DNA of 42,863 nucleotides from Ministeria vibrans ATCC 50519 (Eukaryota > Protista > Filasterea), in NCBI GenBank assembly GCA_943704425.1, contig CALSCP010001768.1, positions 21,753-64,615 on the forward strand, read 5' to 3'. Below, in pieces: positions 629 to 41,969 of the stretch. Position 1 is the first letter of the stretch. Each line of letters opens with the position of its first letter. A program made the position numbers and the translations under genes. Below the pieces are notes generated by a model. It worked only from the letters and a program-made list of their open reading frames with translations. It was not told the origin of the DNA and did no database searches.

Positions 629-1092
629 GGTTCCAGCAGCCTAACAACTCGATTGTCAACAAAGTAAAGCAATTAACTAAAGTCTAAACAGTCTGAGAAT
701 TTGACTTGTGAGATATTTAATTTTGAGGGAAATCATACAAGTCAACTCATCGCCTCAATAAACATTAGCTGCTGAATTGATGATTGAACGATTAATAAGA
801 AAACCTCCAGTCTTTTTTTACTGCCACTCAAGCGTTGGCAAACATCGCGGGTCCTTCCAGCTCCTTGAGTCACCCTTAAACAGAAAACAGGTACGATTGT
901 GTCATCGTCATCGTGAAACTGTCAACAACCTCAAAAGGGCCCATTCGCCTCTTACGACGCTCCCCCGTTGCCGCGCTAGGTCGTGGTTTGGACAGACTGT
1001 TTGGGGTGGGCGCATACTCGGGTGTGGAGGCCGCAAGAAGAACAGGAGAGAGCAAAGCTAAGCCAAAAGCGAAAAAAGGACCAAAAAAAAAA

Positions 1093-4000: not shown

Positions 4001-6709
4001 GCTATGCGCTCAAGACCTTCTCGTTTGTCAAGCGATTGGTGCACAACATTGAGACGGGTGCCGAGCTGCCGCTGGCGGCGCCCCTCACCGTTGTACTTAA
4101 CCAGCTGGCGGCCAAGGACTGGCGCATTCTGCGACCCACTGCGCAACACCTGGAGGGTCGACGACAGGATAATTTGGCGATTTTGTTGCCACCGACACTT
4201 TCGGTCGCGTGTCAGACGATGCAGGACGCGTCGTTGGCCAAGGTTTTTGGGACGACACAGTCGCAGCGTAACCGCAGCATGTCGGCCGTGGACGACGAGA
4301 GCTTTATTATTGTACTACCGTCAAGGACGGCGACCACGGGCGAGAGTGTCTTTGACCTGTGGCAGGGCTCGGAGACGCGACAGCCTTTGCTGAAACGCTG
4401 TGATATTTCGCCCAAGATGCAAGATGACGTTGCGGTGCGCGATGGCTACCTGCTTCTGCTGAGTGGCAATGTGACGAGCAAACCGCGGCATCGACGCGAC
4501 GTGTCCGACGCACTGGGCGACATGGTGGACTGGTCACGAGTGCACTCGACGTGTCCGTACACTACGGTGCGCGATGCGCTTCAAAATGTCTTCAACGAGG
4601 TATGCACCCTTGGACCGTGTATGAGCCACGCTGCGGCAACTGTCCACAACGACTTCGTGTCGGTCTTTACGCGCCCCAAGGAGCTTCATGGAACGGACGC
4701 GCGCAGTCGCGGTCCCAACTTTGTGCTGCACAAGGCCCACGCGTCGGCATTGGCTGTCATGTGGGAGGGCATGCGGATGCAAGGCCACACGTTCACCGAG
4801 CAGGAAGCGTCGTTGGTGCTCCAGTGGATGCGCTTTGTGCTTGACTGTCCGCGCGACACGCTCGAACGCTACCACTACCGTTTGCAAGTGGGCATCACAC
4901 TGGTGGACCACTACTGCGAACAGCTCTACTTTGCTCTGCCTCAGGCAGACCGTCCCGAGTTCACCTATGCTCTCACGCGCTTCATGGCACACGTGCCCGC
5001 CACCAAGCGTCTTGGCAACTCTGTTCCGTCCACTCCCTGTTCAGCTGCTCCCCAACTGCCCCAAAAGGTAAAAGAAAAAATAATTTAATAATAATAATAA
5101 TAATAACAATTTAATTTTTATAGAAAATGTCATCGACTACATTTGACATTGGGCGGCAGATGGGAGCGCGACTTGTGGCGGCACATGCGCTTGCGGGTGG
5201 AGCGGGCAGTGGGGAGCTCTCCTTGACGGGGAGACGAGCGGCCCACCACACCCACCGACGGACGCGCAGTGACGGCGCAGCTGCGTCGTTGATGGGTGTT
5301 GGGAGTGAGCCTGAAGCATCTCCAGAGGTAGGTGGGCCATCGGTTGCTGCTGCAGCCATTGCGACGGTGGGGCGACGGCGGTATGGGCGTGGTCGGGCGC
5401 CATACAAGACGTGGAAGGACATTGATGGGCTGCGCGATGACAAGCTTCAGCGAGGAGGCTACGTGGGCAAGGTGCTGGCGAGTCCGCTACGTGCACTTGG
5501 GCGCGGTGAGGATGCGCAGGAGGACCCGGTGATGCGTGAGCTTAAGCAGTTCTCGTATACGGTGCGGTGGCTGCGTGGACGGCAACTCGGGGCTGGCCAG
5601 TATGGCGAGGTGTTCGTGTGCATTGACTTGGATCAGCCGCGCCAGTTGGCTGTGAAAGAGTTGCGTTTGCAGCGCACCGAAAAGACCAACATCACGTACA
5701 GCTCGACGCTGTTAGTGAAGCCGTCGACGATTCGCGACGAAATGATGATCATGGACCAGATTGATCACAAGAATATTGTCAAGCACTTTGGCATTGAGGT
5801 GCACTCTGATCGTGTCTATCTCTTCATGGAGGTAAAAATGAAAGCGAGAGAGACAAAAGAGAGTGGAAGAGAGAGAGAGAGAGAAAGAGATATTGACTCT
5901 GTGTATGTGACGTGTAGTACTGTTCTGAGGGCACGCTTGCGGACCTAATTGCGTCTGAGCGACTTGTGCGCGAGCGGGACATTCGACAAGTAGCGGCACA
6001 GCTGTTTGACGCCGTGAGCTTCCTGCACTCGCGCGGCATTGTCCATGGCGATATTAAGACGGACAACATCTTTTTCGATCAGGATTATGTGCTCAAGGTA
6101 CAATTTATGATGGAGTGACGGAAGAGAGAGAGAAGAAGAAGAAAAACAAGTTTTTGAACGTGTGTGTGTGCGTGTGTCTGTAGTTGGGGGATTTTGGACT
6201 TGCAAAGAAGTTGAAGGTGCGAGTGCGGACACGCAAAGGAGAGTTGACGCGGGCAGAGGGGACGCCGCACTACTGGGCGCCAGAGATTGTAACGGGAGAG
6301 AGCAGTGAGGGGCATGGCAGGAAGGTACGAAGCAGGAGTGATTGTGTAGAGGAGTGAGTGGAAGTGCAGAGTGTGGTTGGATTTTGTGTGGGGATTACGT
6401 TTGGTGGTCTGTGTGTGGGTGGGTTGAGTCGTGCTGACTTTGACGGGGGTGGGGGTTTAGGTTGACATTTGGTCTGCTGGATGCTGTTTGCTTGAGATGC
6501 TGACGGGCAAACGGCCATGGCACCAGATCAGCAACGAATGGCAGATTGGGTTCCGATTGGCATTCACTGAGGAGCTTCCAGGCGTGCTGGACATCGATGG
6601 AACCAACGCGGCTGCACGTGAGGTCCTTGAGCAGTGTTTTGTGCGCAATCCCACTCTCAGACCCACTGCCCATGATATTCTGCGTCTGCCCTGGTTTCAC
6701 AAGCAATGA
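1093..6709 (+). CDS. MAP3K4: MAP kinase kinase kinase 4 (MEKK4/Ssk2 family), 5 exons
   Basis: Exons 1093-5067, 5124-5831, 5918-6097, 6184-6324, 6461-6709 are in frame across GT-AG introns. The N-terminus has MEKK4-type segments (LWLGVWA; VIALYPSEQQF...FVQRRESLNAY). Kinase motifs: RWLRGRQLGAGQYGEVF, AVKE, LFMEYCSEGTL, HGDIKTDN, LGDFG, GTPHYWAPE, GHGRKVDIWSAGC, EMLTGKRPW. The start at aaaaATG 1093 is inferred. Confidence 0.85.
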
Positions 6710-12911: not shown

Positions 12912-15666
<2,755 letters not shown>

Positions 15667-24449: not shown

Positions 24450-27250
24450 ACGGCAGTGCGACAAGTGACCGTAATTTTGATAAATTTCCAGTGGCTGATA
24501 AGCCAGCACCACCAAGCAAGGATTATCTTCGGATTATCAGCTGGCATACAACACTGATATCAATAGCAGCATTGCTGGCTGAGATCTATGAGAGACCCAC
24601 GACACTCATGGCCATCCCTCTCACCCGGCAATCCGCACTCGGGCTTTTCGGCAAGAGTTCTTTTATGAATCCCTCTGGAAAATGTACACACAAACATCAC
24701 CTCTCCTCGTGGGATCCTCGTGTGGAACCGGACAATAGTCAATACTGACTACCATGGATGGACGTCGCGATGTGCCGCGATGCGTTGTGGTACTCTCTCG
24801 GACACACATATATACACTCCCTCTCAGTTGTTGTCGCTAATAGGAGCATATTTCCGCTCTTTTTGGTTTGAATCTTCTGGTACCACTCTTGAGCACTCCT
24901 TAGTCATCTTCAAAATCCCGGTGTTGTCATCTGCCGTCGTCGTGTCGTGCCTCTTTCTTGCGTCCGTCTCCTTTCACTTGAGTAGTCCCAACCCTGCTCG
25001 CGCTGCAACCCGCCTTCCTTCTTGGGTTTCCTTCTTGCAAACCGAACACCCTTACACAGTTGCGCAAACAACCACTCCTCGTCTCCATCCCTCAACATCT
25101 CTCCTTGTCATCTCGGTGTCTTCCATTTGTCCATTATCGTCTTCTGGGTTCGCTGTATATGCACAGTTTTTTAATTAAACTTTCAGGTGACTTTCAATAT
25201 TGATTTTTATAGAATGTTCAAGTTTGTTACAAATCGACAGAAGACTCTCAGACTCTTTCTTTCCTTCCTTTCTTTCCCTTTATTCTTTTTTGCCTTTTCC
25301 TTCTTCCCTTTTTCTTCTCCCTTTGATGAGGCGTTTTCAGCTGCTCAGCGGTTTACTTGCTTGGGTGAATGGCTCTGCACGCAAGTCTCTCGGAATGTCC
25401 GCTTCGGCTCGTGTGGAGGTGAAGCAGTCGCTTCGGATGGTGAGATTGACTTGTACAATGAAGATTTTCCCCCTAGGACTTCCAAAAATATATACTCCGT
25501 AATATATATATTCCATATATATAATACTGACTGAGAAGACACAGGGCGCTCATCACTTTCACTCTCTACCTCCTCCAGGCTCAAGGGCGGCACTAAGGCA
25601 AGCCCCTGTGACGNNNNNNNNNNNNNNNNNNNNNNNNNNNNNNNNNNNNNNNNNNNNNNNNNNNNNNNNNNNNNNNNNNNNNNNNNNNNNNNNNNNNNNN
25701 NNNNNNNNNNNNNNNNNNNNNNNNNNNNNNNNNNNNNNNNNNNNNNNNNNNNNNNNNNNNNNNNNNNNNNNNNNNNNNNNNNNNNNNNNNNNNNNNNNNN
25801 NNNNNNNNNNNNNNNNNNNNNNNNNNNNNNNNNNNNNNNNNNNNNNNNNNNNNNNNNNNNNNNNNNNNNNNNNNNNNNNNNNNNNNNNNNNNNNNNNNNN
25901 NNNNNNNNNNNNNNNNNNNNNNNNNNNNNNNNNNNNNNNNNNNNNNNNNNNNNNNNNNNNNNNNNNNNNNNNNNNNNNNNNNNNNNNNNNNNNNNNNNNN
26001 NNNNNNNNNNNNNNNNNNNNNNNNNNNNNNNNNNNNNNNNNNNNNNNNNNNNNNNNNNNNNNNNNNNNNNNNNNNNNNNNNNNNNNNNNNNNNNNNNNNN
26101 NNNNNNNNNNNNNNNNNNNNNNNNNNNNNNNNNNNNNNNNNNNNNNNNNNNNNNNNNNNNNNNNNNNNNNNNNNNNNNNNNNNNNNNNNNNNNNNNNNNN
26201 NNNNNNNNNNNNNNNNNNNNNNNNNNNNNNNNNNNNNNNNNNNNNNNNNNNNNNNNNNNNNNNNNNNNNNNNNNNNNNNNNNNNNNNNNNNNNNNNNNNN
26301 NNNNNNNNNNNNNNNNNNNNNNNNNNNNNNNNNNNNNNNNNNNNNNNNNNNNNNNNNNNNNNNNNNNNNNNNNNNNNNNNNNNNNNNNNNNNNNNNNNNN
26401 NNNNNNNNNNNNNNNNNNNNNNNNNNNNNNNNNNNNNNNNNNNNNNNNNNNNNNNGACTTCCAAAAAAAAAAAAAAAACTCTCTACCTCCTCCGTTGGGG
26501 TCAGTAAGAAATCCGAGAAGATATCTAAAATGATCGTGTACGCCTCAGGTGGTTTTTTCTCTCTACTGTCTTTCTCTCACTCTTGCGTCACATCTTCTCA
26601 TGTGAAACACAGTTTTTCCGCGCACCAACAGAGCCCCCGATCGTTGCAGCCTGCTCCTGTTTTTATTCCTGCTTTCTATCCCACTTCCTTCTCTGCTTTC
26701 CCTTTTCGTGTGAAAAATAAGTAGGACTTTCAAAAAAAAACTTCCAAAAAAAGTGTCTTCCACCTGTCCATTATCTTCTTCTGGGTCCGCTGTTCACAAA
26801 CTTCGAGAGCTACTCCCGCTTCGCGTTGCGTGTACCCTGTCTGTGTCTTCATCCATACCTGTTTTTTGTTTTTTCGGAAGTCCTAGCGCAAAAGCTTCAT
26901 TATACAAGACAATTTAGCCATCCGAAGCGGCTGCTTCACCCCCGCATGGGCCGAAGCGGACATTCCGAGAGACTTGCAGGCAAAGGCATTCACCCAAGCA
27001 AGTAAACCGCTTAGCAGCTGAAAACGCCTCATGATTTTAAACTTAATACCAGTCGGTCTGCACATAACCTATCGCTCTCATGCATGCCCTTCTCATCCTC
27101 AACAAAAAACATCTTGCAACTTTATTAAACGGAACATTTTTGTACCCTTTACCTGTTCACCAGCTCGTCTTTTCAAAAGTCGATCCGACCGCGGTCTCTT
27201 TATTTTGTTATTATCACTTTTTACGAAAAAGTTCGTGTCAATTTAATTAA
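24450..27250. mobile_element. degenerate repeat patch (possible mobile-element remnants) spanning an assembly gap
   Basis: No intact gene. Contains an ~160-bp inverted pair (25326-25488 vs 26871-27032), a direct repeat (~25115-25155 vs ~26753-26793) and repeated short motifs (taggacttccaaaa; actctctacctcctcc). No transposase or RT motif recognised. Confidence 0.4.
25614..26455. other. assembly gap (842 N)
   Basis: Run of N. A second 8-N gap lies at 39365-39372 inside SMG5. Confidence 1.
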
Positions 27251-27734: not shown

Positions 27735-30094
27735 CTACAAAAGAATCGCATCCACAACCTCCCCCTGCTCAATATGAAGCTTGTCATCGGTGCGAGGGGG
27801 CAACACGAGAAGGGCATCGGCAGAGCGGTTTGACAGCAACCGTGAACTACACACAGCCATTTAAATGATAAGCGAGTGCTCGATTATTGGCATAGAGCAA
27901 TTATGTTTTACCTGCACTGAGAGCCCGTCGAATGGGCAGTGTACTGGCACGTTCCACGGTCATATGTCAGCGTGACTCGATGATACTCAGGTCGAGGGTC
28001 GAGTCGAATGCGCGCACTAGTCTAAACACAATGCAATACACATCATTGTTAATGCGTTCTTCCACAATAATAATAATAATAATAAGAAGAAGAAGAATAA
28101 TAATAATAATAACAATAATACATATTACGATTATGCTGTACCTTCACACCAATGACCTTGTGCTCATGTGACTTTCCCGCCATCTTGTACAAAGCCGGCA
28201 GCACATGAAGCACGAATGTGACATGAGCACTCACAGGGTTTCCTGTGCAACCTCGTTAAACAAACCGGAGAAAAAAAAAACACAAAAAAACAACGTACAC
28301 ACGAAAAACACATACCTGGAAGCCCGAAAAAGAGAAGGGAGCGGCCATTGTAGTCGATTGTGGCAAAAGTAGTGGGTTTTCCGGGTTTCATGAAGACCCG
28401 TGCAAAGTGGAGGGTGGCAGGAGCACCGGGGAGGGCGGCGAGGGCTGGGCGAAGAAGGTCAAGCTCGCCCATGGAGACTCCGCCAGAGGTGAGGATCACG
28501 TCGGAGTTGGGCAACAGCGACGTCAGATGCGACACGAGCGAGGCAAGGTCATCCGAGGCAATACCGGCATCGTGAGGCTGTGCCGAGTGAGACTGTGCAA
28601 GCGACGCCAGCAGCGTCGAGCGGTTTGCATCGCGAATATGTGAGGGCGGCAGAGGACTTGGGTGTGACGGCTCCACCAGCTCATTGCCTGTGCTGAGAAC
28701 GGACACGCGTGGAAGCGGGTAAACCAGAACGGAAGTGACGCCAACGGTAGCGAGAAGGCCGAGTTCGGCAGGGAGCAAGAGAGTGCCCTTGGCGAGCACC
28801 CGTTCGTCGAGGGCAATGTCGCTGCCCACGGCACGCACATCATGGCCAGCACACGGGGCCGCCGTGACAACGCGCACACGCAGCTCCACTCGACCATCCT
28901 CACTGCTCTCCAACAAAACAGTGTCTTCAACCTGAACAACGGCATCGGCTCCCGGTGGCAGAGGCGCCCCTGTGCTGATTCGGGCGACCTGCCTTGGACG
29001 CAACGGCGCGGCACACTCAGAGGGATCAGCGCCTGCCGTGAGCGCAACTGACACCACGTCAAAGTCACCGACGCCATCGGCAGCAATGACAGCATAACCA
29101 TCTTTGACAGACGCGGCAAAGGGCGGAACGGGACTTGCAGCGTGTACGTCCTCGGCGAGTGTGTGGTGGAGTGCATCGCCGAAGGGCATGGTGACGGGCG
29201 TAAGGGCCGCTGCATGCGACAAAACTGTCGACGTCGCCTCGCTCATGGGTATCATAGGGTAAGGAGAGGTTCGCGGACGTCGACTCACAGGAGTGTCGCC
29301 CGACGAAAGCTGCAGGGGCGTCCGGGCGTTGTTTTCCTGGTGGTGGTGGTGGTGGTGGTGAGAGCAAACATGCGTGTGTGGCTGTGAAGTGGACGTGGTC
29401 TCGTCTGCCTGTTGTTGCATTGTCGCGTGGACCTTTGCAACACGTTTTTGTTGTTCGCCGCGGATGAGATCAAGAGCGTGAGGAAGAACCGGGAGAAGAA
29501 ACGACAGGCACTCGCAGGCAGCCTTGGGCGAGCCTGGCACATTCACAATGAGAGTCTGCTTGCGCACACCACAAACCGCCCGCGACAAGGCCGCCATCGG
29601 AGTGACTTCAAGTGACTTCACCAGCATCAGCTGCGACAAAGACTCGGCCAGGCGATCCACTACTTGACGCGTAGCCTACGACACAAACACGACACATCAT
29701 CCCACAACGCCCCTTTCCAAGTGGGGCTCTGCTACCTCGGGAGTCACGTCTCGCTGGGCAAACCCCGTGCCACCCGTGGTCACCACCAAGTGGGCACCGT
29801 CCTCGTCGGCATACCGTCTAAGGCGCGCCGCAATTGTGTCGATCTCGTCGGCACAAAGATCGCGACTCACTGATAAACAAATTCGAGTCTGGTCAGCGAC
29901 CAACACTGCTGCACACTGTCCGTACCGCGGGTAACGCCAATGGGACTCTCCCTCAGAGCCTTCTCCAGCGCAGGCCCACTGCGATCCTCCGCCGTTCCGG
30001 CGAAACACCGATCGCTCACTGAAACGTCAACAGTGAGCAGACGACTCACACACATCAACATTCGCATCTCACCTGTCAACACACAAGCAATCAT
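27735..30094 (-). CDS. GPHN: gephyrin / molybdenum cofactor insertase (MogA G-domain + MoeA E-domain), ~7 exons
   Basis: MIACVLTVSDRCF..AEDRSGP, ADEID, VVTTGGTGFAQRDVTPEAT, ALSRAVCGVR, NVPGSPKA. Then SPYPMI, PPFAASVKDGYAV, ISTGAPLPPGADAVVQVEDT, STGNEL, IRDANR, TSGGVSMGELD, MKPGKPTTFA, GLPGNPVSA, LDPRPEYHR, STGSQCSSRLLS, stop at 27735. Confidence 0.93.
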
Positions 30095-30266: not shown

Positions 30267-33200
30267 TTAAAAGGCATGACGGGTACGCATGTCCTCGAGC
30301 TTCTTGTTGACCTCGGCGGGAGAGCGGTCAAGCTCTTCGGCAATGGAGCGTCGCTTGTGGACATCAAGAGTGCCAAAGAGCTCACAGAGGTCGCCATCAA
30401 TGACTGCCTTGCACGGCTGATACGACGAGCGGTACGCCAGGTGGTCGCGCCCCAGCAACGGTGGCTGCTCCTGCCGCATGTGCATCTCAAGATGCTGGAA
30501 GAACTCAATGTCCTCACGCCTACCAAACAACAGAGCATTGAGAATGAATTGTAATGATTGCTATCGTAGTACGTTCTGAAGGCCATGAGACAGCCAATGG
30601 ACCCGCCCAGAGTGGTGAACACGAGCGTCTCCTCGCCGCTCGGCGACAGACGTGCCTTCTGCAGACTCGTCACCGTGTCTCCCACATAGTACGCACACAG
30701 AAGCTCAGCCTAAAAAAAGAAAAAAAGAAAAAAAAGAAAAAAAAAAGAAATTAACAATAAAAAAAGGTATGCACTCATGGGAGTCTTGTCACCTTTTGAT
30801 CGGCACTGTTGAGAGGATGGCGCTCATAGAGAAGTCGGGAGGCACTAGTGGCAGAGTCATCGCGATCGTCGTTGACGTCGTGGGGCAGACGCAGCACAAA
30901 GACATTGCCAAACTTGTCGCCGGCTGCGACAGTGCTGTAGTCAAGCAGGACGGCGCTAGTGACGTGCCGCGGCAGCGAGTCGTCCGCAAACACGACCAAC
31001 TGGTTGTCGCTGTGTCGGTACCGCACAAAGTGAAACGACTCCTGAAGGTCCCCCACCGTCAGTCGGTTCCCCATTGCCCCAATCCACACAATCTGTGTTG
31101 GAAATCGCTGCAAAGCACAAAGAAGAAGTAGAAAAAGAAGAAAAAAAAGAAAAAGAAAAATAAAGTTGAGGCACACACAGAGATTCCACAGCGTTTACCT
31201 TATTCTCACACTTTCGCAAGAGTTTACTCTGGCCTAAGTCGAAAAGACGAAGAGCGCGACCAACACCGACGGCCAAACGACCCTGAAAGGCACAGAGGGC
31301 GCCCGGAACGCCATCAACGGCTGTTCGGTGTACCAGTCGCAACGACACCCCATCCGCCCCAATCTCAAACGTGTACAGCACACCCTGCGCATCCAATGGC
31401 TAACAACAACAACAACAACAACAACAACAATACATACAACATTCAATATCACTACTCTACCCCTCTTTCCACTTCTGATGAGCTCTACCTTGGATAAGTT
31501 GTGGGAAGGGACAGCGCCCACGACGAGATAAAGAGCGTCGGGATGAGAAGCAAACTCCACGACGGCAATGGAGTAGCCGGCGTGGTTCTCGTCAAGAGGC
31601 ACCGTCAGCAACGACTCGCCGGTCGCGCCGGCACGCACTACACGCACCTGAGCGGCCCATGCACCGGCGGGCGCCTTGGCCGAGCCAAACACCTCCTCGG
31701 GCAGCTGCATCTCTTCGTCGACAACCATTTCGTTCTCGTCCGTCTGCAGTTGCGACTGGGCATTTGCCTTGGCCGCCTCAGAGAAGGCACGGTGATCGCT
31801 CTCGAGCAGGTAGAGGCAATGGGCGGTGGGGTGCACGGCGAGACGACGCGGAGTGCGCGTCACGGGCGTGGTGACGGTGTTGAAAAGCGAGCCGAGCTGG
31901 GGCACAGCAATAATGCGCAATTTGTCGCCGCTAATGGCCACAATGCCTTCGGGACACTGTGCCGAGTGGAAGGCACTAGCGTGCTCAAGTACCTCGTAGT
32001 TGAGCGGACTCATGTGGTAGCGCGCCTCGTAGCTGTAACTCAGCCACGAACGACTGCTCAGTGCCAACACAGCCTGGTTGCCTTGGGCATCCACACGGAA
32101 CATACGCACGGGACGGGCACCCAGGTAGCGCGTGCGCGTGTCTGTCAGCTGGCCCGAAATGCCGTCGAGTGACGAGCGCAGAAGCACGCCGTTGTCCAAA
32201 CCAATGTTGAGGAAGAGCGACGAGCCACCGCCGCCGCGCGTTGCCACGTTCGAACCGGCGCCGCCCATGTTGCCACCCGTCGCAACGGCGCTCTCGTCGC
32301 CCGACATCTCCACAATGCACAGGGACGCTGCTTGTGCCGGCAGCGCTTGCATGCCTACCGGCTGCAGACACGTCGTAGGGTTGAGCGACACAATGCGCAC
32401 CGTGTTGTCCGCACAGCCAATGGCCAGGTAAGAGAAGCGCTGGCGGCCCACAGGCACACTGCCAATGGCCATGCACACTGCTTCGGCAGGCAGGTCGCAG
32501 CGCTCCGTCGACTCGTTCAGCTGGCCACTCATGTCCAACTCAAAGTACACAATCTCACCGCCACCCAGTGCCAGCGCCACCTGACGCTCGTTCACCGCGG
32601 CACACGCAATGGGTCGTTGACTTGGCGTCTTCCACTCGTTGACGCGGCGGTCCGCCTTGACGTGGCGCAGACCACCCGGGTACACCTGCAAGAGATCATC
32701 GTCGCCAATCTGTGCCACGTGGATTGTCGGCGACTGCAGCATGAGGCCGCTGTCGCTGACTTCCTCGACTGTCTCACCAATCGACAGGACCAACGTCGCA
32801 TTGACAAACGACACAACAATGTAGCGATCAAACTCGTCGGCACGCGCGCGCTTCACGCTCCAAATGGCACTGGGGTTGCCCGGGAGTGCACTCACGGCCA
32901 TCTCGGCAACTGCAAGGCCGTGACGCAGAGTGCGCACCGACGAACGTGGACCACGTCCGCAAAGAGAGTACAACTGCATTGAGTCTTCGCCGGCGAGATC
33001 AGCAACGCAACTGTCAAGGATGGGCGCGAGCGACTCGAGTTCGTCGACGAGCATCAGGTTGAGGAGGGGCCGTGGAATGAAGACGGTTGCGTCGAGAAGG
33101 GGTGCCGGAATGTCATCGAGGTCCTCCGAGTCAACGACGGCATTGGCCTTGCTGTTAAATTCGGGCTCGTCGCCGCCATCGCCCAGCTGTGTGATCTGGT

Positions 33201-34644
33201 ACAGGTGGTGGTTGCCAAACTCACTGGCAACAAAGAGGAAACCCGAACGCAGCACACAAATGCCCGCCGCGACCGGCACCGTGTCAAAGTACTTGATGCG
33301 CATCTTCGTAACGGTGTTCTCCTCGGGATCGACGTCGAGCATGACACGGAAGAGGTCACCCGAGTCGGTCTGGACCAGGAAGAAGAACATACTCTTGGTC
33401 TTGTGCGCAGCTGCAGCGACCACCAGCGGAATGCGCGTCGGGTCGGAGATGTCGTTGCGACGACGCGGCAGTGCCACTCGGTGCTCGGTGGTCTCGCCAT
33501 AGCACTTGTAGAGAAGGTAGCCTTCGCAGCAGACAATGACACCGCTGGGTCCGTCGCTGCCACCAGGCACGGCAACGAGCAAGTTGGCAAAATCGCGCAG
33601 GGGCTCGCTTGCCTTGCGCACCACGTGGTTAAGACCAAGGTCCAGCTCGTAGAAGGTGAGCGACTGTCGTGTGGCGGGCGCCGCCTCGCCAGTCGTGTCG
33701 TCGTCGGCGTCCTCATAGTCGAGCTCGAGGCAGGCAAACATGGGGTTCTCAAAGCCCACGTCGACACCGACACAATGGAAAAGAAGCGTGTGCGCCTTGT
33801 GGCCCTCCAGCGGCGAAGAGATGGTGAGGTTGGCGTTGCCGTCGCGATTCATAATGTACACGAGTTTCTGTTTCTCGACGGCTGCGATCATAATGGCACG
33901 TCCCTTGGCATCCGCCGCCACAAACTGTCCCGGGATGCACCGTCGCGCGCCGCTCTTGCCAAACGTCTCCATGTGCACCCGATCAAACGAGCCCTTGGCC
34001 GGCTGAAACTCCAGGATCACAATGCGACCCGAATCAGAGCCGACAACAAGATAGTCTGAGAGCGAGAGAAAAAAAAAAAAAAGCAAAGCAGTGTTGGCGT
34101 TAGCATGTCCAATCTGGGGCGGCGAAGGGGCACACAGGGGCGCGTAGACGGACATGCGTGCATGCAGCAGGAGAGGCGGGTCGATGGGGATGCGGGTGGG
34201 TGGATGAAACGACGAACGGTATTTGACAACGCGACGTTTTTTTTTGAGGCTTTTTTTTTCTCTCCTTTGAAGATGTGAGGCGTACCCTTTTGAGAGCCGG
34301 TCAGACGGAACGCGGTGAGGCTTCGAATCACGCCAAAGACGCGGCCACCCGAGTGTAGAATGGACTTTAACTTGCCAGTGGCGGCATCGACTTTGTACAG
34401 CTCGAGCACGTCGTTGTGGGCGCAGGCGATCTCCTGCTGCTTCGGGAGTCCGCTGAAGGCTCCGTGGCACATGCACTGTATACCTGTGGGCGAGAGGGAG
34501 CGGGGGCAGACGTGGAGAGAGAGAGGGAGAGAGAGGAGGAGGGGAGAGTGTTAGAGAGCATGATTCTTTGTACTGTTGCTTACTTGCACCACGCTGCAGC
34601 GTGACCGCATACAAATGGACACTCGATGGGTCAAGGGTGGCCAT
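30267..34644 (-). CDS. SF3B3: splicing factor 3B subunit 3 (SAP130/Rse1), multi-exon
   Basis: DYLVVGSDSGRIVILE, HMETFGKSGARRCIPGQ, LTISSPLEGHK, YELDLGLNHVVRK, LRHGLAVAEMAVS, DTRTRYLG, LLRKCENK, FQHLEMHMR, VIDGDLCE, KKLEDMRTRHAF. Confidence 0.97.
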
Positions 34645-35308: not shown

Positions 35309-38300
35309 TCACTCCAACTCTTCCACAGACTCCCTCTGCGACAAAAGACTCCCCGACGCCTCATCGGACGACGCCATGGTGCGACGCATCTGGCGCATGA
35401 GAGACGTGGCGCCGCCACCTTGTGCAAGCTCCGAGCCACCCAGGCGGGCCTTCTTGCGTTTGGCACGCGAGCGCAGGAACCGCGCGCCGGCCGACGTGAG
35501 CGAGCCACTGCAGCCGCGCAGCACGCCGTACCACTTGTACAGTTCGGCACAGCTCACGTCAAAGAGCGCAAAGATCACGCAGGCAATGAGGGCACTGACA
35601 GGCAGGTGGACCAGCTGTGCGATAGGCACGACCGAGAGAAGCAGCGCGAGCGACAGGAGGGAGACAGTCGCCCACAGGAGAAAACGACGATTCACAGTGA
35701 GGCCATGACGCAGAACAGGAATGCGTTCAGAGCGCAAGTGGAAGCAGAGGAAGACTATGTTCAGTACAAGAGTGCAAAACGTCGCGGCTGTGTCAGCGTC
35801 GTTGGGGGCTAGGGCAGGCACAGCCTTGCGGCTAAGGTGACGGGCCGTCAGCGAAGCGCCGAGAGTCGTCGCAAACACGATGATGGCGTGGACAACGACA
35901 CGGATGGCGAGGTGCGTCGTGAAGATAGTGGGGCCGTCGCGCACGGGCTGTTGCTGACTGCGCTGCTTGTGCTGCTGCTTGAGCTGTTGCAAGTGCGTCA
36001 TTGGAGGCTGCTGCATCACGTCAGCCTCGGGCGGTTCGTGCAGCAGCACAAAAAGCGCTGCTGTGTCGGCACAGAGCAGTACCAGAACCATTTGCACGGG
36101 CGACAGCGACGGCGAACCGTAAAAGGCACTCGACGCAAGGAAGAGCAGCGCCACAGCAAGCTTAACCACCAGTAAAAAAGTGATGGCCTTGCGCAGATTG
36201 GACAACATCACGCGGCCAAGACGAATCGCCTCGATAAACGTTGCAAAATTCGCGTCGTGAACACTCATCGAGGCAGTGTGGAGAGCAACATGGCCCACAG
36301 CTGCATCTTCGTCGCGGCCCATCACCGCTGCAAAGTTCCCTTGCGCCATGGCGGCCACGTCAGCTGGCTGAGCCCCGAGCACGGCCACACACTCACCAGC
36401 GTCTTGCAGCATCGAGACAAGACGGCGGCGTGCGCTCGCGTCCACCCGAGCAAAGGCGGCCGTGTGAAAAAGCAGGTCGGCGGGCGATGTATCGTGATCG
36501 TCGAGCGAGTGTGCCAGACGAAAGGCGCCCCCAAACTCGTCGTCTTCGTCGCTCAGTCGTGCCATGGTGCCCACTGCAATGGATGTATCCAAACTGTCGC
36601 CCGTTGCCATGATGACACGGATGCCCGCATTGCGACACGTCTGTACTGCTTCACCCACGCCCCCTCGTAGTGGATCCTCAAACGCCGCAAAGCCCGCCAG
36701 CTCAAACTGTCGCTCGTCGACGCCCCACTCGTCGAAGGCAAGCTGGATGCGCTCGAGCAGTGTCGATGGATCTGCAGTGCTCGACATGTCAGCAAGTGGA
36801 TCGCGACGGAGCGCAGCAAAGGCAATCACACGACGGCCTGAACGAGCGTACTCGCTAAACGACGCTTCGAGACGCGCCACTGTGGCATCGTCCAAAGGTG
36901 CACCGCTGCCATTGCCACTGGGAGTGCCATGGTGGTGGTGGCAGGGGGAGCGCATGCTGGTGGAACACACGCGTAGAATGGTCTCGGGTGCACCGCGACA
37001 GATGAGGATAGCTCGGTCGCCAGTGGAGCGGTCGCCGGTGAGCAGAACACGCTGCACAACAACCTTGCGGGCGTCATCAAAGGGTAGCTGCTGCGTGAGG
37101 CGAGGCCGCAGCGGGGCAATGGCGTGTGCAGAGAGACAGAGCGGGCGGCTCCACGGGTGGCCGGGCCCCACGTCGGTGAGAGTGGTGTCAAACAAATTGT
37201 CGGCGTGTCGTAGAGCAGCCATGAGCCGCATTGCGCCAACACCGTGTGGGTCTTGCTCGAGGGTGTCGTTGACGGAGGCTGTCGATTGCTGACTGTCGTT
37301 TGCACTTGGGCGCAGTTGGTGGTCTGCGCCAAAGCTGAGAAGCCAAGTGGAGAAGAGAGTCTCGAGACTCGACGAACTAGTACTAGTCGAGGAGGAGGAA
37401 GCGGTGCTTGCGTGGCCTGTGCCGTCGATGGCGCCCACCAGGCGCAATTGGTTGCGAGAGAGCGTGCCGTTCTTGTTGGTGACAATGGTGGTAATGCTGC
37501 CGACGAGTTCGGTTGCGTGGTGGTACAGAGAAAAGTCAGTGCACAGGCTGAGGGAGCAAAAGGAGACAGAGAGTGCAAGGGCCAAGGGAAACAAATGAGC
37601 AATGGTTGCGGCGACAAGCGACAAGGTGGTGGGCACAAGCTCACGGCCGTCGCGAAGGCCACGAGCAAGGAGCACGAGAGGCGTGACCGTGGCGACAATG
37701 AGACCAACGGCAGTGACGTAGACAGTGGCGCGGTGGACGGTGTTGTAAAGCAGGGCCGAGGGGCCCTCGGAGGTGGTGCGCGTCGACGATGAGAGCGCGT
37801 ACCGTGCAAGGCCTGTCAAGACGCTTTGGTTGCGATGGGGTTGCTGTTGCTGTTGTACATTATGATTGCTGGCGGAGGAGGAGAAGGAGACGTGGTTCTT
37901 CGGAAAGGACCAGCTGCGGCCGACCATGCGACTGGCATACGTGGTATGTGTGCCCGTAGCTGTGACCACTGCTTCGCCGGTGCCGCTGGTGACGACCGAG
38001 CCGGCGTAGACCATGACGAATTCCTTGAGGAGTTGCTCAACTGGTCCGCCGCGGGTGGCTGTCGACAGAGGGGGAGGGGAGCCGGTGGAGTCCTGGCGGC
38101 TTGGGAGCGGAGGCGAGCCCATTGAGACACTCGTAGAGCGCGACATGATAGGCGACGAGTTTGGTCCGGCGGCAGCGACTGCAAGTGCGGTGCGCACCGA
38201 CGTCTGCTCTGCTTCAGACGGTTCGCTGGGCTCCGTCGTAGTCGCCGCCGAGTTGGCGCGACGTGACTGTCGTACGCGCGCACACATTCCCAGGTTTGCC

Positions 38301-39031
38301 GAGGCGTCCTTGAGCACCGCCTTGAGATGTCTTCTTCGCGGTGTCTTTGACGAGGAGGTGGTGGACGCGGAGGCGAGAGGGGATTCGTCGACAATGAGAG
38401 AGCGGGAGGAGACGAGACGCGCATCGACAGGAACAATGTCGCCGGGACGCAGGACAATGACGTCGCCGAGAGCAAGCGAGTCGGCGGTGACACGGTAGAA
38501 CGAAGCGCCTGGTCGACGCACCGTGATGCAGGTGGGATAGCTTGTGTTGGCAAGGAGGCTTTGTTGACGCCAGGCAAGAAGGAGCGGGACCACCGTTGTG
38601 GCGGCGACCAGCAGACACACTGCGGCGGTCGTCGCCGTCTCCAGCGAGTTGTACCACACTGCCGTGGTGACCATGAGCGCCATGAGGAGTCCGAGAACGG
38701 TGGCGTGCGCATCGAGCGAGGCAAGGGGGGTTGAGGGTGCCGGGGCGCCTTTGCGAATGTCAAAGGCGGCGCGCTGTTCGCCCACAAGCGCAACGCGCTC
38801 GCGTGATGCAATGGCCGACAGCCCCGAGGGCGACACACCGTCTCCGGCCAACGAGCCAAGCGCACGGAGGCTAGCGGCGGCCGTAGAGCGCCACGGCGTC
38901 GACGCTGCCTCCAACAGTTCCTGTCTTAGCGCCTCTCGATTCTGTTGCTTGGGACGCCGCTGCGACAATAGCGCCTCAACGTCGTCGTCGTCATCTTCAT
39001 CAAACGCCCCTTCAAGAATTCGTGACGACAT
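35309..39031 (-). CDS. P-type ATPase homolog (P2-like), single exon, catalytic motifs degenerate
   Basis: A domain LALGDVIVLRPGDIVPVDARL..VDES; YAGSVVTSGTGEAVVTATG; N domain LPFDDARK, RGAPE; P domain FEDPLR, GIRVIMATGD, FARV, DANFATF..GR; about 10 hydrophobic segments. First ATG at 39031. Confidence 0.88.
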   Translation of the reverse strand: MSSRILEGAFDEDDDDDVEALLSQRRPKQQNREALRQELLEAASTPWRSTAAASLRALGSLAGDGVSPSGLSAIASRERVALVGEQRAAFDIRKGAPAPSTPLASLDAHATVLGLLMALMVTTAVWYNSLETATTAAVCLLVAATTVVPLLLAWRQQSLLANTSYPTCITVRRPGASFYRVTADSLALGDVIVLRPGDIVPVDARLVSSRSLIVDESPLASASTTSSSKTPRRRHLKAVLKDASANLGMCARVRQSRRANSAATTTEPSEPSEAEQTSVRTALAVAAAGPNSSPIMSRSTSVSMGSPPLPSRQDSTGSPPPLSTATRGGPVEQLLKEFVMVYAGSVVTSGTGEAVVTATGTHTTYASRMVGRSWSFPKNHVSFSSSASNHNVQQQQQPHRNQSVLTGLARYALSSSTRTTSEGPSALLYNTVHRATVYVTAVGLIVATVTPLVLLARGLRDGRELVPTTLSLVAATIAHLFPLALALSVSFCSLSLCTDFSLYHHATELVGSITTIVTNKNGTLSRNQLRLVGAIDGTGHASTASSSSTSTSSSSLETLFSTWLLSFGADHQLRPSANDSQQSTASVNDTLEQDPHGVGAMRLMAALRHADNLFDTTLTDVGPGHPWSRPLCLSAHAIAPLRPRLTQQLPFDDARKVVVQRVLLTGDRSTGDRAILICRGAPETILRVCSTSMRSPCHHHHGTPSGNGSGAPLDDATVARLEASFSEYARSGRRVIAFAALRRDPLADMSSTADPSTLLERIQLAFDEWGVDERQFELAGFAAFEDPLRGGVGEAVQTCRNAGIRVIMATGDSLDTSIAVGTMARLSDEDDEFGGAFRLAHSLDDHDTSPADLLFHTAAFARVDASARRRLVSMLQDAGECVAVLGAQPADVAAMAQGNFAAVMGRDEDAAVGHVALHTASMSVHDANFATFIEAIRLGRVMLSNLRKAITFLLVVKLAVALLFLASSAFYGSPSLSPVQMVLVLLCADTAALFVLLHEPPEADVMQQPPMTHLQQLKQQHKQRSQQQPVRDGPTIFTTHLAIRVVVHAIIVFATTLGASLTARHLSRKAVPALAPNDADTAATFCTLVLNIVFLCFHLRSERIPVLRHGLTVNRRFLLWATVSLLSLALLLSVVPIAQLVHLPVSALIACVIFALFDVSCAELYKWYGVLRGCSGSLTSAGARFLRSRAKRKKARLGGSELAQGGGATSLMRQMRRTMASSDEASGSLLSQRESVEELE

Positions 39032-39130
39032 TGGTTTTTTTTTGTGGAAAAAAGTTTGGATTTCCGATTTGGAATTCTCGATCATCAGTCATTCTTTGAT
39101 TTCGTTCAAAAAAGTCTTTCCCTCCAAAAA

Positions 39131-41969
39131 ATGGACGAAAGGCATGCGAGAACCCGGGTTCCCTTGACCTGTATTGACGATCCTACTTTGTTTCTAGGCT
39201 ATTTGGCGCGAAGGCACGGGCGATATTTGAAGCTGGAGATGAGGCGAGTTCAGTGGACGCTGTTGACGATCTGTGGACCAACGTGGTGAGCCGTCCGGTG
39301 CAGCGGGCCCGCAGAAAGTGCCAGCAAGCAGCAGCAGCGGCGGCCGTGGACGCGGAGGCGGCGCNNNNNNNNACGTCGACAATGGTGTGGCGGCTGGCAC
39401 ACCGCCTCGCACGCCCGCTCGAGCACTTTCCCGCCATCCTTGGCGCGCCATGGCCGCCCGCCAGTGAGAGCAGCAGCAACGACGGCACCTCTGGAGACCA
39501 GGACAGGAGCAGCGTCTGTGCTGCGAGTGCAGTGCAAGCGTGTCTGATTGTCCTTGGCGATTTGGCTCGCTACGAAGAGCAACATGTCCGTCCTATTGTT
39601 GGCACAGTGCTTTCCGACGACACCCTTCCGTTATCACATAATCTTTACGTTGCCGCTGCCAATGTCGAAGGCATTCCTGCATCGGGACGGGTCTTCAATG
39701 CGCTTGCAATTCAATGCGACGGACTTGGCGAGGTACAAAAGCACACGATCGCAAGAAGACGACTGTCGACCAACACTTCCCTCGACGCTTCTGCTTACAC
39801 TCCTTTTATTTGTGTTTTACTCTTTTAAATATTTTATTTATGTTACCACTCTTTTTAATAATAGTATCAATAATAATAATTATTATTATTATTATCATTA
39901 TCTTATTCATGTTACCACTCCTTTTAATATCTTATTAATTATGTTACCACTCCTTTTTGATATCTTATTTATGTGACCACTCTTTTTTAATATCTTATAT
40001 TTTATGTTACTCTTTTTAACATTCTTCTCTTTTAGCTGTACTATCTGTGTCGATCTGCGGCCGCACCACGACCTTTCTCACGGGCACGCGAAAACCTCAT
40101 GCGGGTACTAGCGCAGATGGCAGCGCCGACGGAAGACGAGTCAGGGACGAAGGGGGGAGATGGAGTCGCAAGTGGACGAGAGGCGGTGGTGCGTGCTCTG
40201 TCGGTGTATCTGTTGACGCTGTTTGCTGGGGAACGCAAGCGAACGGATGCGTGTGCGACGGTGTTTGTGACAACACTAAGTCGCTATGTGGATACAGCAC
40301 TGACGCCAACGGATTTGTTGCGCGTGTCGGCCATTGTGCTGTTTGCACAGTGGGAAGTGCGCGAGAAGGAGCTGTTGAGTGGACGCAAAGAGCTGTTTCC
40401 TCGTGCTTTGCGAGTGGCAGTGGAAACGATGAAAGTAGTGCTCTCGTGTCACTTTGGCGATGAGGGTCGTGCGTCGTTTGTTTTGGTACGGAGGGGGAAA
40501 GAACTTGCGAGATGAATGGACGAACGTGAAATTTGTGTAGATTTGGCTGACGTGGTTGCGAGAGCGAGTGTTTAACGGTGGAATGGTGACGGATGAGACG
40601 TGTACGCGAGGGAGTTATGGAGCGGCCGTGCTTGAGACAGTGGCGAGTATGGGGCGGGTAAGGGATGAGGAAAGGGAGGAAGGGGAAGGGGAAGGGCGTG
40701 GACAGCAGCGCAAGGGACTGTTCCCGACGACTCAGCGGAAGAGGGAAGCCCTGGGTGGTGGGGATGTGTTGTTGCTGGTGTGGAGGCATGTGGCAGTGTG
40801 GGGCAACAGAGCAGCGGGTAATGAATGGGCGATGCAAAGGCGAGCACATCAGTGTTAATGTAGGTGTGTTTTGTGATGATTAGGGGCACTGGATATGGAT
40901 GCGAAAGTAGAGCAAGAGGGACTGCGCAGCGAAGAAGAGCGAGAAATGGATGGGTTTAGGCCGATTGAAGGAGAAGATGGACGCGACGGGAGAGGGTATG
41001 GAGAGTGGAGCAGTGAACGAAGTGTGAGGATTGTGCGGATTGTGCAACGCACTGCGCAAGTGGCTCAGGGCATCCGCTCATTGCGCTATGACAGTGATGC
41101 GCATCGCTTTGTGTACAGTGCGCGCGAAGGAAATGAGATTGAGACGAAACAGATGCGTAAAATGGCGCAACAGAAGTTACTTTCTGAAGTGGAGCAGTTG
41201 CAAAAGGTAGAGCACGCAGAATATAACAACAATTGAGTGATGAGGGTTTGTGTAGAGTACGCTGGAAAGAAAGGGAGGTGTGGGGACTCTGGGCACAGCA
41301 TATGGAGTTCTGGACACGACTGCGCTGACAGAGCACCTGGCGCGCGTGCAGGCACTGGTGAACACACAAACACTGATTGTAATCGTGCCCTGTGCAGTCA
41401 TTGCCGATCTTGATACGCTCAAGGGACTGCGAGGCACTGAAATGGTCCATTTGGCCCAGTCTGCGCGAATGGCCATTAGTTATTTGGAGGTACCTGTGTG
41501 GGAATGAGGTTATTTGTGTCTTGATGGTTGGGTTGTCTTTCAGCGGTGTTTCAGTGCGGGTGAGCCACATTTGAGGGCTCAGAAGCAAACGGAAACAGTG
41601 AGTGGCAGTCTAGACATTGATTCGTGCTGTCGCTACTTTAACGCTTTGGAAGGAGGTACGCTGTGTGTGTGTGTCTTTCTCTTTGCCTGTGTGTGTATAT
41701 ATATAATTGAGACTGGTTTGAGTTTAGGTGCGACTCTGGTAAGTGGGAACGAGGAGAATGAAACAGAAGAAGAAGAAGAAGAAGAAGAAGAAGAAGGAGA
41801 CAAAGAAAAAGAAGACGAAGAAGAAGAAGAAAAAGAAGAAGAAGAAGGGACTGTGTGGAGTGATGAGAGTGCCAGTGAAAGTGATGAAGAGGAGTCCTAT
41901 GCAGTGACGTTTATTGGACGACTGGTTAAGCGTACAAGACACAACGCAAAGCGGAAGAAGAGACGATAA
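39131..41969 (+). CDS. SMG5: SMG5-like NMD factor (EST1/14-3-3-like domain + degenerate PIN domain), multi-exon
   Basis: CLIVLGDLARY, GRVFNALAI, LYYLCRS..PFSRARENL, EEEREMDGFRPI. SMG5-typical MRKMAQQKLLSEVEQL is followed by the PIN region YGVLDTTALTEHL..IVIVPCAVIADLDTLK..ARMAISYLE..HLRAQK. Exact start uncertain (39131 or 39144). Confidence 0.8.
39835..40022. repeat. AT-rich ~30-bp minisatellite in an SMG5 intron
   Basis: About 5 diverged copies of ttatgttaccactctttttaatatctta. Confidence 0.75.

Follow-up and report, generated by a model that had tools for sequence, protein, structure and literature searches.

A stand-alone P2-type ATPase homologue of Ministeria vibrans lacking the phosphorylated aspartate: a candidate nucleotide-binding pseudo-pump

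What defines the P-type ATPases is the aspartyl-phosphate cycle, and other uses of the fold are debated over TMEM94/ERMA. In this work we analyzed a gene of Ministeria vibrans ATCC 50519, located on the minus strand of a 42,863-nucleotide stretch of contig CALSCP010001768.1 (positions 21,753 to 64,615; hereafter, the window), whose product is a P2-type ATPase homologue carrying an asparagine where active pumps have the aspartate that is phosphorylated. Judging from its sequence, we suggest, with a probability of about 0.6, that this protein is a selected, non-pumping pseudo-pump that binds nucleotide. From the residues that have been replaced, the Post-Albers cycle is predicted to be impossible, with neither phosphorylation nor E1P/E2P cycling nor pumping. 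It might further be that a stand-alone P2 pump has been turned into a non-catalytic ATP-binding membrane protein kept for a signalling, regulatory or scaffolding role, a proposal whose chances seem to us somewhat short of even.

The evidence comes in the first place from the motifs on which the cycle depends. Alignment with SERCA and the other pumps places every named motif in its expected column, and the replacements that an initial annotation of this DNA had read from the sequence (VDESPLASAS, GAQPAD and ASARRR) are all present at the computed coordinates (Table 1). The same annotation had reported a phosphorylation loop TNKNGTLS with an Asn codon at 37475-37477; the codon is indeed AAC, and the residue it encodes, Asn537, falls in a column that is Asp in 100% of 133 active relatives, while Asn539 stands in place of Thr. 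The dephosphorylation motif LTGES has become LASAS (residues 237-241, with ASAS for TGES at 238-241); the Thr, Gly and Glu columns of TGES are 92-99% conserved among relatives. At the hinge of the phosphorylation (P) domain, TGDGxND reads LGAQPAD (903-909), that is, Asp is replaced by Ala905, Gly by Gln906 and Asn by Ala908, with Gly904 and Asp909 kept, and of the three ligands that the hinge would offer to Mg2+ and phosphate, two are gone. Arg886 substitutes the invariant P-domain Lys (the position of SERCA Lys684). Concerning the membrane helix M4, the AHLFP previously noticed is present, but the ancestral motif in the protein's own clade is PEELP and not the PEGLP assumed at first; of this motif the second Pro (P500) alone is retained, and His497 stands in place of the M4 Glu. 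The combined loss of residues for phosphorylation, dephosphorylation and ion binding that had been claimed for this gene is therefore real, since replacements are found at the nucleophilic Asp, at the Glu of TGES and that of M4, at the Lys of the P domain and at both the Asp and the Asn of the hinge. Having lost the acceptor Asp, TGES, the hinge residues (now Ala905 and Ala908), the Lys (now Arg886) and the M4 carboxylate, the protein should be unable to be phosphorylated, to cycle or to pump.

A different picture emerges on the nucleotide side. The motifs described as surviving are all there, each in the expected alignment column: PFD..RK (as PFDDARK, 668-674), RGAPE (697-701), DPLR (804-807), TGD (within ATGD, 827-830) and NFATF (within DANFATF, 944-950). 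The single residues T828, G829, D830, D804, P805, R807, F669, G698 and R752 are all retained, and so are DxNF, the GR after the hinge, the Lys in M5 and the Asp in M6. The Arg of RGAPE is normal in active members of the clade (P0093, P0098 and P0094), so that it is not a sign of degeneration.

Both the profile searches and the structural model indicate that the protein belongs to the P-type ATPase superfamily, with an actuator (A), a P and a nucleotide-binding (N) domain on a ten-helix membrane domain. The Pfam domains occur in the correct order (E1-E2_ATPase 1.9e-10, Hydrolase 6.1e-5, Cation_ATPase 0.0099, Cation_ATPase_C 8.9e-17), and TIGR01494 (HAD-IC family P-type ATPase) is matched with 88.2 bits, above its curated cutoff of 62.3. 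The best sequence matches in the PDB are plant ACA8 (5.7e-33), SERCA2 (1.9e-29) and Listeria LMCA1. An AlphaFold2 model of residues 120-1215, built on an alignment of 59 relatives, reached a predicted TM-score (pTM) of 0.80 and a mean predicted local distance difference test score (pLDDT) of 74.8, with low confidence confined to the insertions described below. Foldseek matched this model to SERCA2b (6ln6, E 9e-37); with VIA-align, the E1-Ca state of LMCA1 (9evc) gave Z 35.6 and a root-mean-square deviation (rmsd) of 4.2 over 790 residues, SPCA1a gave Z 33.8 and SERCA Z 32, and PfATP4, PMCA and Na,K-ATPase also fell within Z 31-34. The rmsd of the model is about 4 to E1-type structures, versus about 8 to E2P-type ones. 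In the hydropathy profile, nine membrane peaks are clear and a tenth is weaker, and the modelled M4 helix is predicted to be still broken at the retained Pro500. The full A/P/N/transmembrane architecture and the intact fold expected from the initial annotation are thus recovered by the domain order, the AlphaFold2 pTM, the LMCA1 match and the hydropathy peaks.

The question of where this protein comes from was addressed by database searches and phylogenetic trees. An exhaustive HMMER search of 1.84 billion representative proteins returned 11,905 matches, the best with 176 bits at 30% identity, and no orthologue; a word-indexed search of 5.8 billion proteins found active pumps only, none of them above 31% identity. 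Scanning the metagenome contigs of JGI brought no confirmed relative, the exact-sequence look-up of the protein gave no record, and that in the ESM Atlas only generic cation-ATPase clusters. The orthologues with N/x-K-x-G-T that might have been expected in related protists are accordingly missing from every library searched. The nearest relatives (E 1e-47 to 1e-40) are about 30% identical, a distance at which synonymous sites would be saturated for the ratio of nonsynonymous to synonymous substitutions. These best matches share IPEELP in M4, YLACK in M5 and ELFMD in M6. With respect to this signature (PEE(L/M)P, Lys, Asp), the M. vibrans protein possesses the M5 Lys975 and the M6 Asp1007, which fit, and has M4 degraded to AHLFP. 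The PEELP-type clade (P0093-P0121) embeds bacteria and a patchy set of eukaryotes (a liverwort, a glaucophyte, a zygomycete fungus and protists). Its members include Marchantia polymorpha MARPO_0016s0126 / PTQ45076.1, Gloeochaete wittrockiana EP00276_P003890, EukProt GILK01013194, Basidiobolus ranarum and proteins of the EukProt GILK/GILJ transcriptome, all the named ones being hypothetical proteins. PEELP-type proteins score below every NCBIfam equivalog cutoff, and in the literature we found neither a paper with the PEELP motif nor a published name for the clade. Mycobacterial CtpE (family 23) was considered as a member of the same group and ruled out, since it has VPEGL.

A tree of 61 sequences (LG+C20+F+G4), for which P1B pumps from the same genome served as outgroup, united the PEE(L/M)P proteins in one group with 94% support and placed the M. 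vibrans protein in a seven-member sub-clade (99% in the Shimodaira-Hasegawa-like approximate likelihood ratio test), three members of which come from named eukaryotes. A second tree (LG+G4) placed it in the eukaryotic sub-clade as well, with 99% support. Basidiobolus P0094 appeared as its sister in this second tree (97%, with a long-branch warning), but by pairwise scores P0094 is no nearer to it than other members of the clade are, and we leave this relationship uncertain. The terminal branch of the M. vibrans protein, with 2.75 substitutions per site, is the longest in the tree (median 0.71, sisters about 0.9-1.3) and two to three times longer than those of the sisters, which a release from constraint of the catalytic and M1-M4 positions could have brought about. 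These data appear best explained if the protein derives from P2-like cation pumps of a eukaryotic clade, as yet uncharacterised, that is typified by PEELP, the M5 Lys and the M6 Asp.

The losses are not evenly spread over the protein. Taking as reference the 71 columns that are at least 90% conserved in the 133 active relatives, 46 are kept by the M. vibrans homologue. We sorted these columns by their established roles into 23 catalytic ones (TGE, M4 PE, the DKTGT loop, the xGAPE Lys, the N-domain Arg, TGD, the P-domain Lys and TGDGxND) and 48 others, and the former proved to be changed far more often than the latter (14/23 versus 11/48; odds ratio 5.2, Fisher p=0.003). A second comparison, based on the residues invariant in all six sister pumps, gave a consistent gradient by region: all seven are kept in the N domain, 14 of 23 in the A domain, 18 of 31 in the second half of the P domain, 9 of 14 in M5-M6, 5 of 16 in M3-M4 and only one of eight in M1-M2. 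The nucleotide-binding domain is thus as conserved as it is in the active sisters, whereas the losses in M1-M4 and in the phosphoryl-transfer residues imply that the ion entry side and the phosphoryl chemistry have been released from constraint. Moreover, DKTGT is retained at no fewer than ten other P-type ATPase loci of this 29.7-Mb assembly, and so is GDGxND wherever that part is covered, which means that the loss of the motif is specific to this gene.

On these grounds the following scenario can be proposed. A pump ancestor of the P2-like PEELP type would have given rise to a translated, membrane-inserted pseudo-pump in which ATP would still be bound through the N-domain pocket (Phe669, Arg697-Gly698 and Arg752) and the TGD loop, as the retained residues suggest, but would probably not be turned over. 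In the membrane, the protein might then serve as a scaffold or as a regulator that depends on nucleotide, probably held in an E1-like shape, and selection would have kept its frame open and its fold intact. The SERCA mutants D351N and D351A still bind ATP, with an affinity that is raised by the removal of the negative charge of Asp351; such an increase would suit a sensor. Substitutions of the D351N type block the formation of E1~P and trap the pumps in an E1-like state (PMC13322241).

It might be objected that a gene in this condition is simply dying, i.e., that it is an orphan paralogue drifting toward extinction whose open frame is a leftover not yet hit by a stop codon or a frameshift. Its being a singleton among 1.84 billion representatives, its branch, the longest in the tree, its large low-complexity insertions and the high GC content, which keeps even wrong frames open over 327-349 codons, would all fit this idea. 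However, when we simulated drift by composition-preserving point substitutions on the actual coding sequence, ignoring indels and so being generous to the open frame, the frame was shut fast: it remained open in 46% of the runs at 1% divergence, in 22% at 2%, in 2.3% at 5%, and in none of 2000 runs at 10%. At 5% divergence about 2.6 of the 23 catalytic residues are expected to have changed, and 14 or more would be reached with a probability of 6e-7. Since at least 14 catalytic positions have changed, each of them enough or nearly enough to kill the pump, most of this change must have come while the frame was being kept open, and the frame is unlikely to have stayed open through the amount of drift that these changes require, which points to selection on the translated product. 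Indeed, the replacement of the acceptor Asp by Asn, the loss of the TGES Glu and that of the hinge Asp are each enough to abolish the cycle, so that the later losses would have arisen in a protein that no longer pumped and whose frame, fold and helices were maintained. The coding GC pattern, the ten hydrophobic helices, the confident fold and the seven of seven N-domain invariants also persist, against what a dying gene would lead one to expect. The overall pattern looks to us like the signature of a pseudoenzyme rather than that of a drifting pseudogene, and we regard the latter as decidedly improbable. The selection for a non-pumping role envisaged in the initial annotation finds support in the simulation, which argues that the frame continued to be maintained once catalysis had gone, but not in the libraries searched, where no orthologue turned up.

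Even if the protein does not pump, it may work through its membrane domain, as a cation leak or channel, a lipid or ion receptor or the partner of a transporter, with the cytoplasmic head retained merely for folding or docking. The clade-typical Lys975 in M5 and Asp1007 in M6 are kept, the identity in M5-M6 is 0.76 of the sister-to-sister level, and the break of the M4 helix at Pro500 is kept in the model. A precedent might be found in TMEM94, which has no TGES, an occluded pocket, no ATPase activity and a buried lipid (PMC12134183, PMC13322241). On the other hand, no regions of the protein are more degraded than M1-M4, which form the path of entry and hold the main ion site (1/8 and 5/16 kept), and an N domain conserved as in the active sisters is hard to explain as ballast. 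The decay of M1-M4 and the conservation of the N domain favour, though not decisively, the nucleotide-binding pseudo-pump, and we consider a role confined to the membrane domain unlikely.

That the protein is still an enzyme, its Asp being restored by adenosine-to-inosine editing of AAC to GAC or its function being taken over by another acceptor residue, is in our opinion scarcely credible. One A-to-G change in the codon would suffice to restore the Asp, and nothing else speaks in favour of it, while TGES, the hinge, the P-domain Lys and the M4 Glu have been lost by multi-nucleotide changes that editing cannot undo, and no acidic residue adjoins position 537.

Several points weigh against a selected, nucleotide-binding pseudo-pump. 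With the Asp and Asn gone from the hinge and the Lys from the P domain, MgATP may be bound less strongly, and the case for ATP binding is built on retained residues. The argument from drift assumes that the catalytic losses were neutral, and it does not fix the date of the last selection, so that a recent total loss of function after a long pseudoenzyme phase would be compatible with the data. As no orthologue was found, the dead state is known in one species only, and the long branch, together with an odd amino-acid composition, makes the exact placement in the tree uncertain.

As for the gene model, the ATPase frame is uninterrupted over 1258 codons, counted from its first ATG at 39085 down to 35309. 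The single uninterrupted frame with the full architecture that had been described is therefore there, but the boundary given for it, 39031, corresponds to the second Met (Met19), a start from which would yield 1240 residues; the frame itself reaches 39085, and Met19 may be the true start codon. The GC content at codon positions 1/2/3 (0.65/0.52/0.68) follows the same pattern as in the neighbouring genes, and this pattern is present in every 100-codon block, low-complexity insertions included; along the frame the GC content is 57-67%, against 36-48% in both flanks, and an intron-like dip is absent. The possibility that introns are hidden in the in-frame insertions is therefore unsupported, since the GC content does not fall there and third positions keep the coding pattern throughout. 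Two same-strand, out-of-frame open reading frames lie within the gene (36826-37809 and 37816-38865, both minus; 327 and 349 codons); the high GC content accounts for them better than overlapping genes would. The two insertions of the A domain are not present in relatives; they amount to about 150 residues and are predicted to be disordered, pLDDT being below 50 in segments 122-228 and 272-323 of the model, which correspond to residues about 241-347 and 391-442 of the protein. At the N-terminus there is an Asp run (DEDDDDD), and right after M10 a tail (residues 1195-1258; 35309-35440, minus) is strongly basic, RFLRSRAKRKKARLGG, and then ends in a Ser-rich acidic stretch. From their composition these terminal tails look like regulatory or lipid-/calmodulin-binding tails.

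The genes neighbouring the ATPase are ordinary eukaryotic ones, and a functional link to it is not evident. Runs of genes on one strand had raised the idea of a kinetoplastid, which was dropped, as the genome gave no match to a spliced leader. The MEKK4-like protein is split over two open frames, its kinase domain extending into the next one (5127-5948), so that an intron or a frameshift may be suspected. Two runs of N occur in the window, an 842-base gap (25614-26455) and an 8-base gap (39365-39372); the open frames at 25559-26507 on both strands lie almost entirely inside the former and are therefore artefacts, while the latter lies upstream of the start codon of the ATPase, at a distance of 280 bases. 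Between the upstream region of the ATPase and the next open frame sits a very AT-rich stretch (39800-39999, GC 0.195) with simple repeats of the Ile/Asn/Tyr type in translation, which may be a promoter or an intergenic microsatellite region.

Table 1. Position of the ATPase homologue, of its diagnostic motifs and of the other genes recognised in the window
Feature	Position in the window	Strand	Basis
P2-type ATPase homologue, complete single-exon open reading frame, 1258 aa	35309..39085 (stop codon included)	minus	translation of the open reading frame, domain matches, fold
A-domain loop DESPLASAS, residues 233-241	38363..38389	minus	alignment
Two low-complexity insertions in the A domain, residues ~243-352 and 392-432	37790..38359	minus	alignment, pLDDT
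M4 ion-site motif AHLFP, residues 496-500, for the clade's PEELP	37586..37600	minus	alignment, model
Phosphorylation loop TNKNGTLS, residues 536-543, for (S/T)DKTGTLT	37457..37480	minus	alignment
Retained nucleotide-side motifs PFDDARK, RGAPE, Arg752, DPLR, ATGD	36596..37084	minus	alignment
ASARRR, residues 883-888	36422..36439	minus	alignment
P-domain hinge GAQPAD, residues 904-909, for GDGxND	36359..36376	minus	alignment
M5-M6 core with clade-typical Lys975 (VVKLAV) and Asp1007 (CADTAA) retained	36056..36169	minus	alignment
RSE1/DDB1/CPSF1-type double beta-propeller protein	31234-34644	minus	2e-99 and 2e-83
MoeA/gephyrin-type molybdopterin protein	28164-29660	minus	
Protein kinase	14030-15514	minus	
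MEKK4-like protein, with the kinase domain in the second frame	913-5948	plus	

The M. vibrans protein is not the only degenerate one in its neighbourhood. Among the best 150 of the 11,905 matches, at least four other relatives, bacterial and eukaryotic, are degenerate. P0218, from an Actinomycetota metagenome-assembled genome (cluster member HEY1330896.1), reads NEIAG at the position of DKTGT and AGGA at that of TGES, with an Arg instead of the P-domain Lys; P0122 (EukProt GILK01009371), which is a paralogue from the GILK transcriptome, has no TGES and GDRCQD at the hinge; P0123 (an ENA protein) has SEKTG; P0094 (Basidiobolus ranarum, KAK9762695.1) has PGALL in M4, TSD where TGD is expected and an Asn in place of the M6 Asp; and P0154 has no TGES and GDNIDD. 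It seems that catalytic-motif loss recurs in this P2-like clade. The degenerate relatives in an actinobacterial metagenome-assembled genome, a fungus and another protist hint that this may be a recurrent and overlooked outcome of pump duplication, and annotation pipelines would call all such pseudo-pumps calcium pumps. If our interpretation is true, a repeated origin of pseudoenzymes from P-type pumps would be suggested, and the protein would offer a clean natural test case for a non-cycling scaffold, as regards ATP binding, the E1-like shape and the partnering with transporters. Its practical value is limited, the gene being an orphan.

A full-text literature search retrieved no relevant paper joining P-type ATPase and pseudoenzyme. 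Degenerate P-type ATPase folds are nevertheless already known (TMEM94/ERMA and the P4 flippase-guanylate cyclase fusions, P4-GC), and the case is less singular than the initial annotation implied. What sets this case apart is the combination of a stand-alone P2-type protein, the absence of a fused effector, Asn at the acceptor position and a conserved N domain.

A comparison with the known systems may help in placing the protein. The closest are the PEELP-type pumps, which, judging from their motifs, are presumably active and share with it the M5 Lys, the M6 Asp, the domain order and, in some members, the Arg in xGAPE; however, they keep DKTGT, TGES, PEELP, the P-domain Lys and GDGxND, all five of which have been lost in M. 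vibrans. The Ca2+-ATPases of types P2A and P2B (SERCA, SPCA/PMR1, PMCA/ACA8 and LMCA1) have the same fold and topology, but the M. vibrans protein remains far below their equivalog cutoffs (TIGR01116, 103.6 versus 703.4; TIGR01522, 133 versus 798.3; TIGR01517, 145.8 versus 507.05). Their M4 Glu is a His in this protein, the Asn/Glu pattern of M5 is replaced by the helix carrying Lys975, and of the M5/M6 ligands it keeps Asp1007 in M6 only.

The animal protein TMEM94/ERMA is, like ours, a full-length membrane protein whose fold is that of P-type ATPases and whose catalytic motifs are degenerate: it has DKQGIL and, instead of GDGVND, GSSANL, TGES is missing and the nucleotide pocket is occluded (PMC13322241, PMC12134183). 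Its status as a pump is disputed. According to one group, the uptake of Mg2+ by TMEM94 depends on the Asp, and D427N abolishes the reported uptake (PMC13322241), whereas another group found it to be without ATPase activity, Mg2+ binding or conformational change (PMC12134183). The two proteins differ in that TMEM94 keeps the Asp, while the M. vibrans one naturally has Asn, in a loop reading NKNGTL; in that the nucleotide pocket of the former is occluded, while the N-domain residues of the latter are conserved; and in that the former is conserved across animals, while the latter is an orphan. The best structural and PDB sequence matches listed are all canonical P2/P3 pumps, and the TMEM94 chain is absent from the 60 best PDB sequence matches and the 50 best structural matches listed, no direct pairwise comparison having been made.

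A further parallel comes from the alveolates, where both the Asp and the Glu of the A domain are gone from the flippase modules of P4-GC proteins in Cryptosporidium, GC-beta, gregarines and Tetrahymena (PMC13466520). In Plasmodium GC-beta, Cryptosporidium and Tetrahymena, these modules, with the DKTGT Asp and the A-domain Glu lost or altered, are yet retained and required (PMC13466520). Their retention can be attributed to the fusion of the P4 lipid-flippase module to a cyclase; the M. vibrans protein, in contrast, is a stand-alone P2-type protein without a fused effector domain. Finally, the laboratory mutants SERCA D351N, Na,K-ATPase D369N and H,K-ATPase D386N carry the same substitution at the same position as Asn537, and Asp-to-Asn mutants of these three pumps cannot form E1~P (PMC13322241). 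They are engineered single changes in intact pumps, whereas the change described here is natural and the other catalytic motifs have been lost too. If the scenario we propose is true, the M. vibrans protein would be the equivalent in nature of the mutant D351N made in the laboratory, and would parallel TMEM94 in free-living form.

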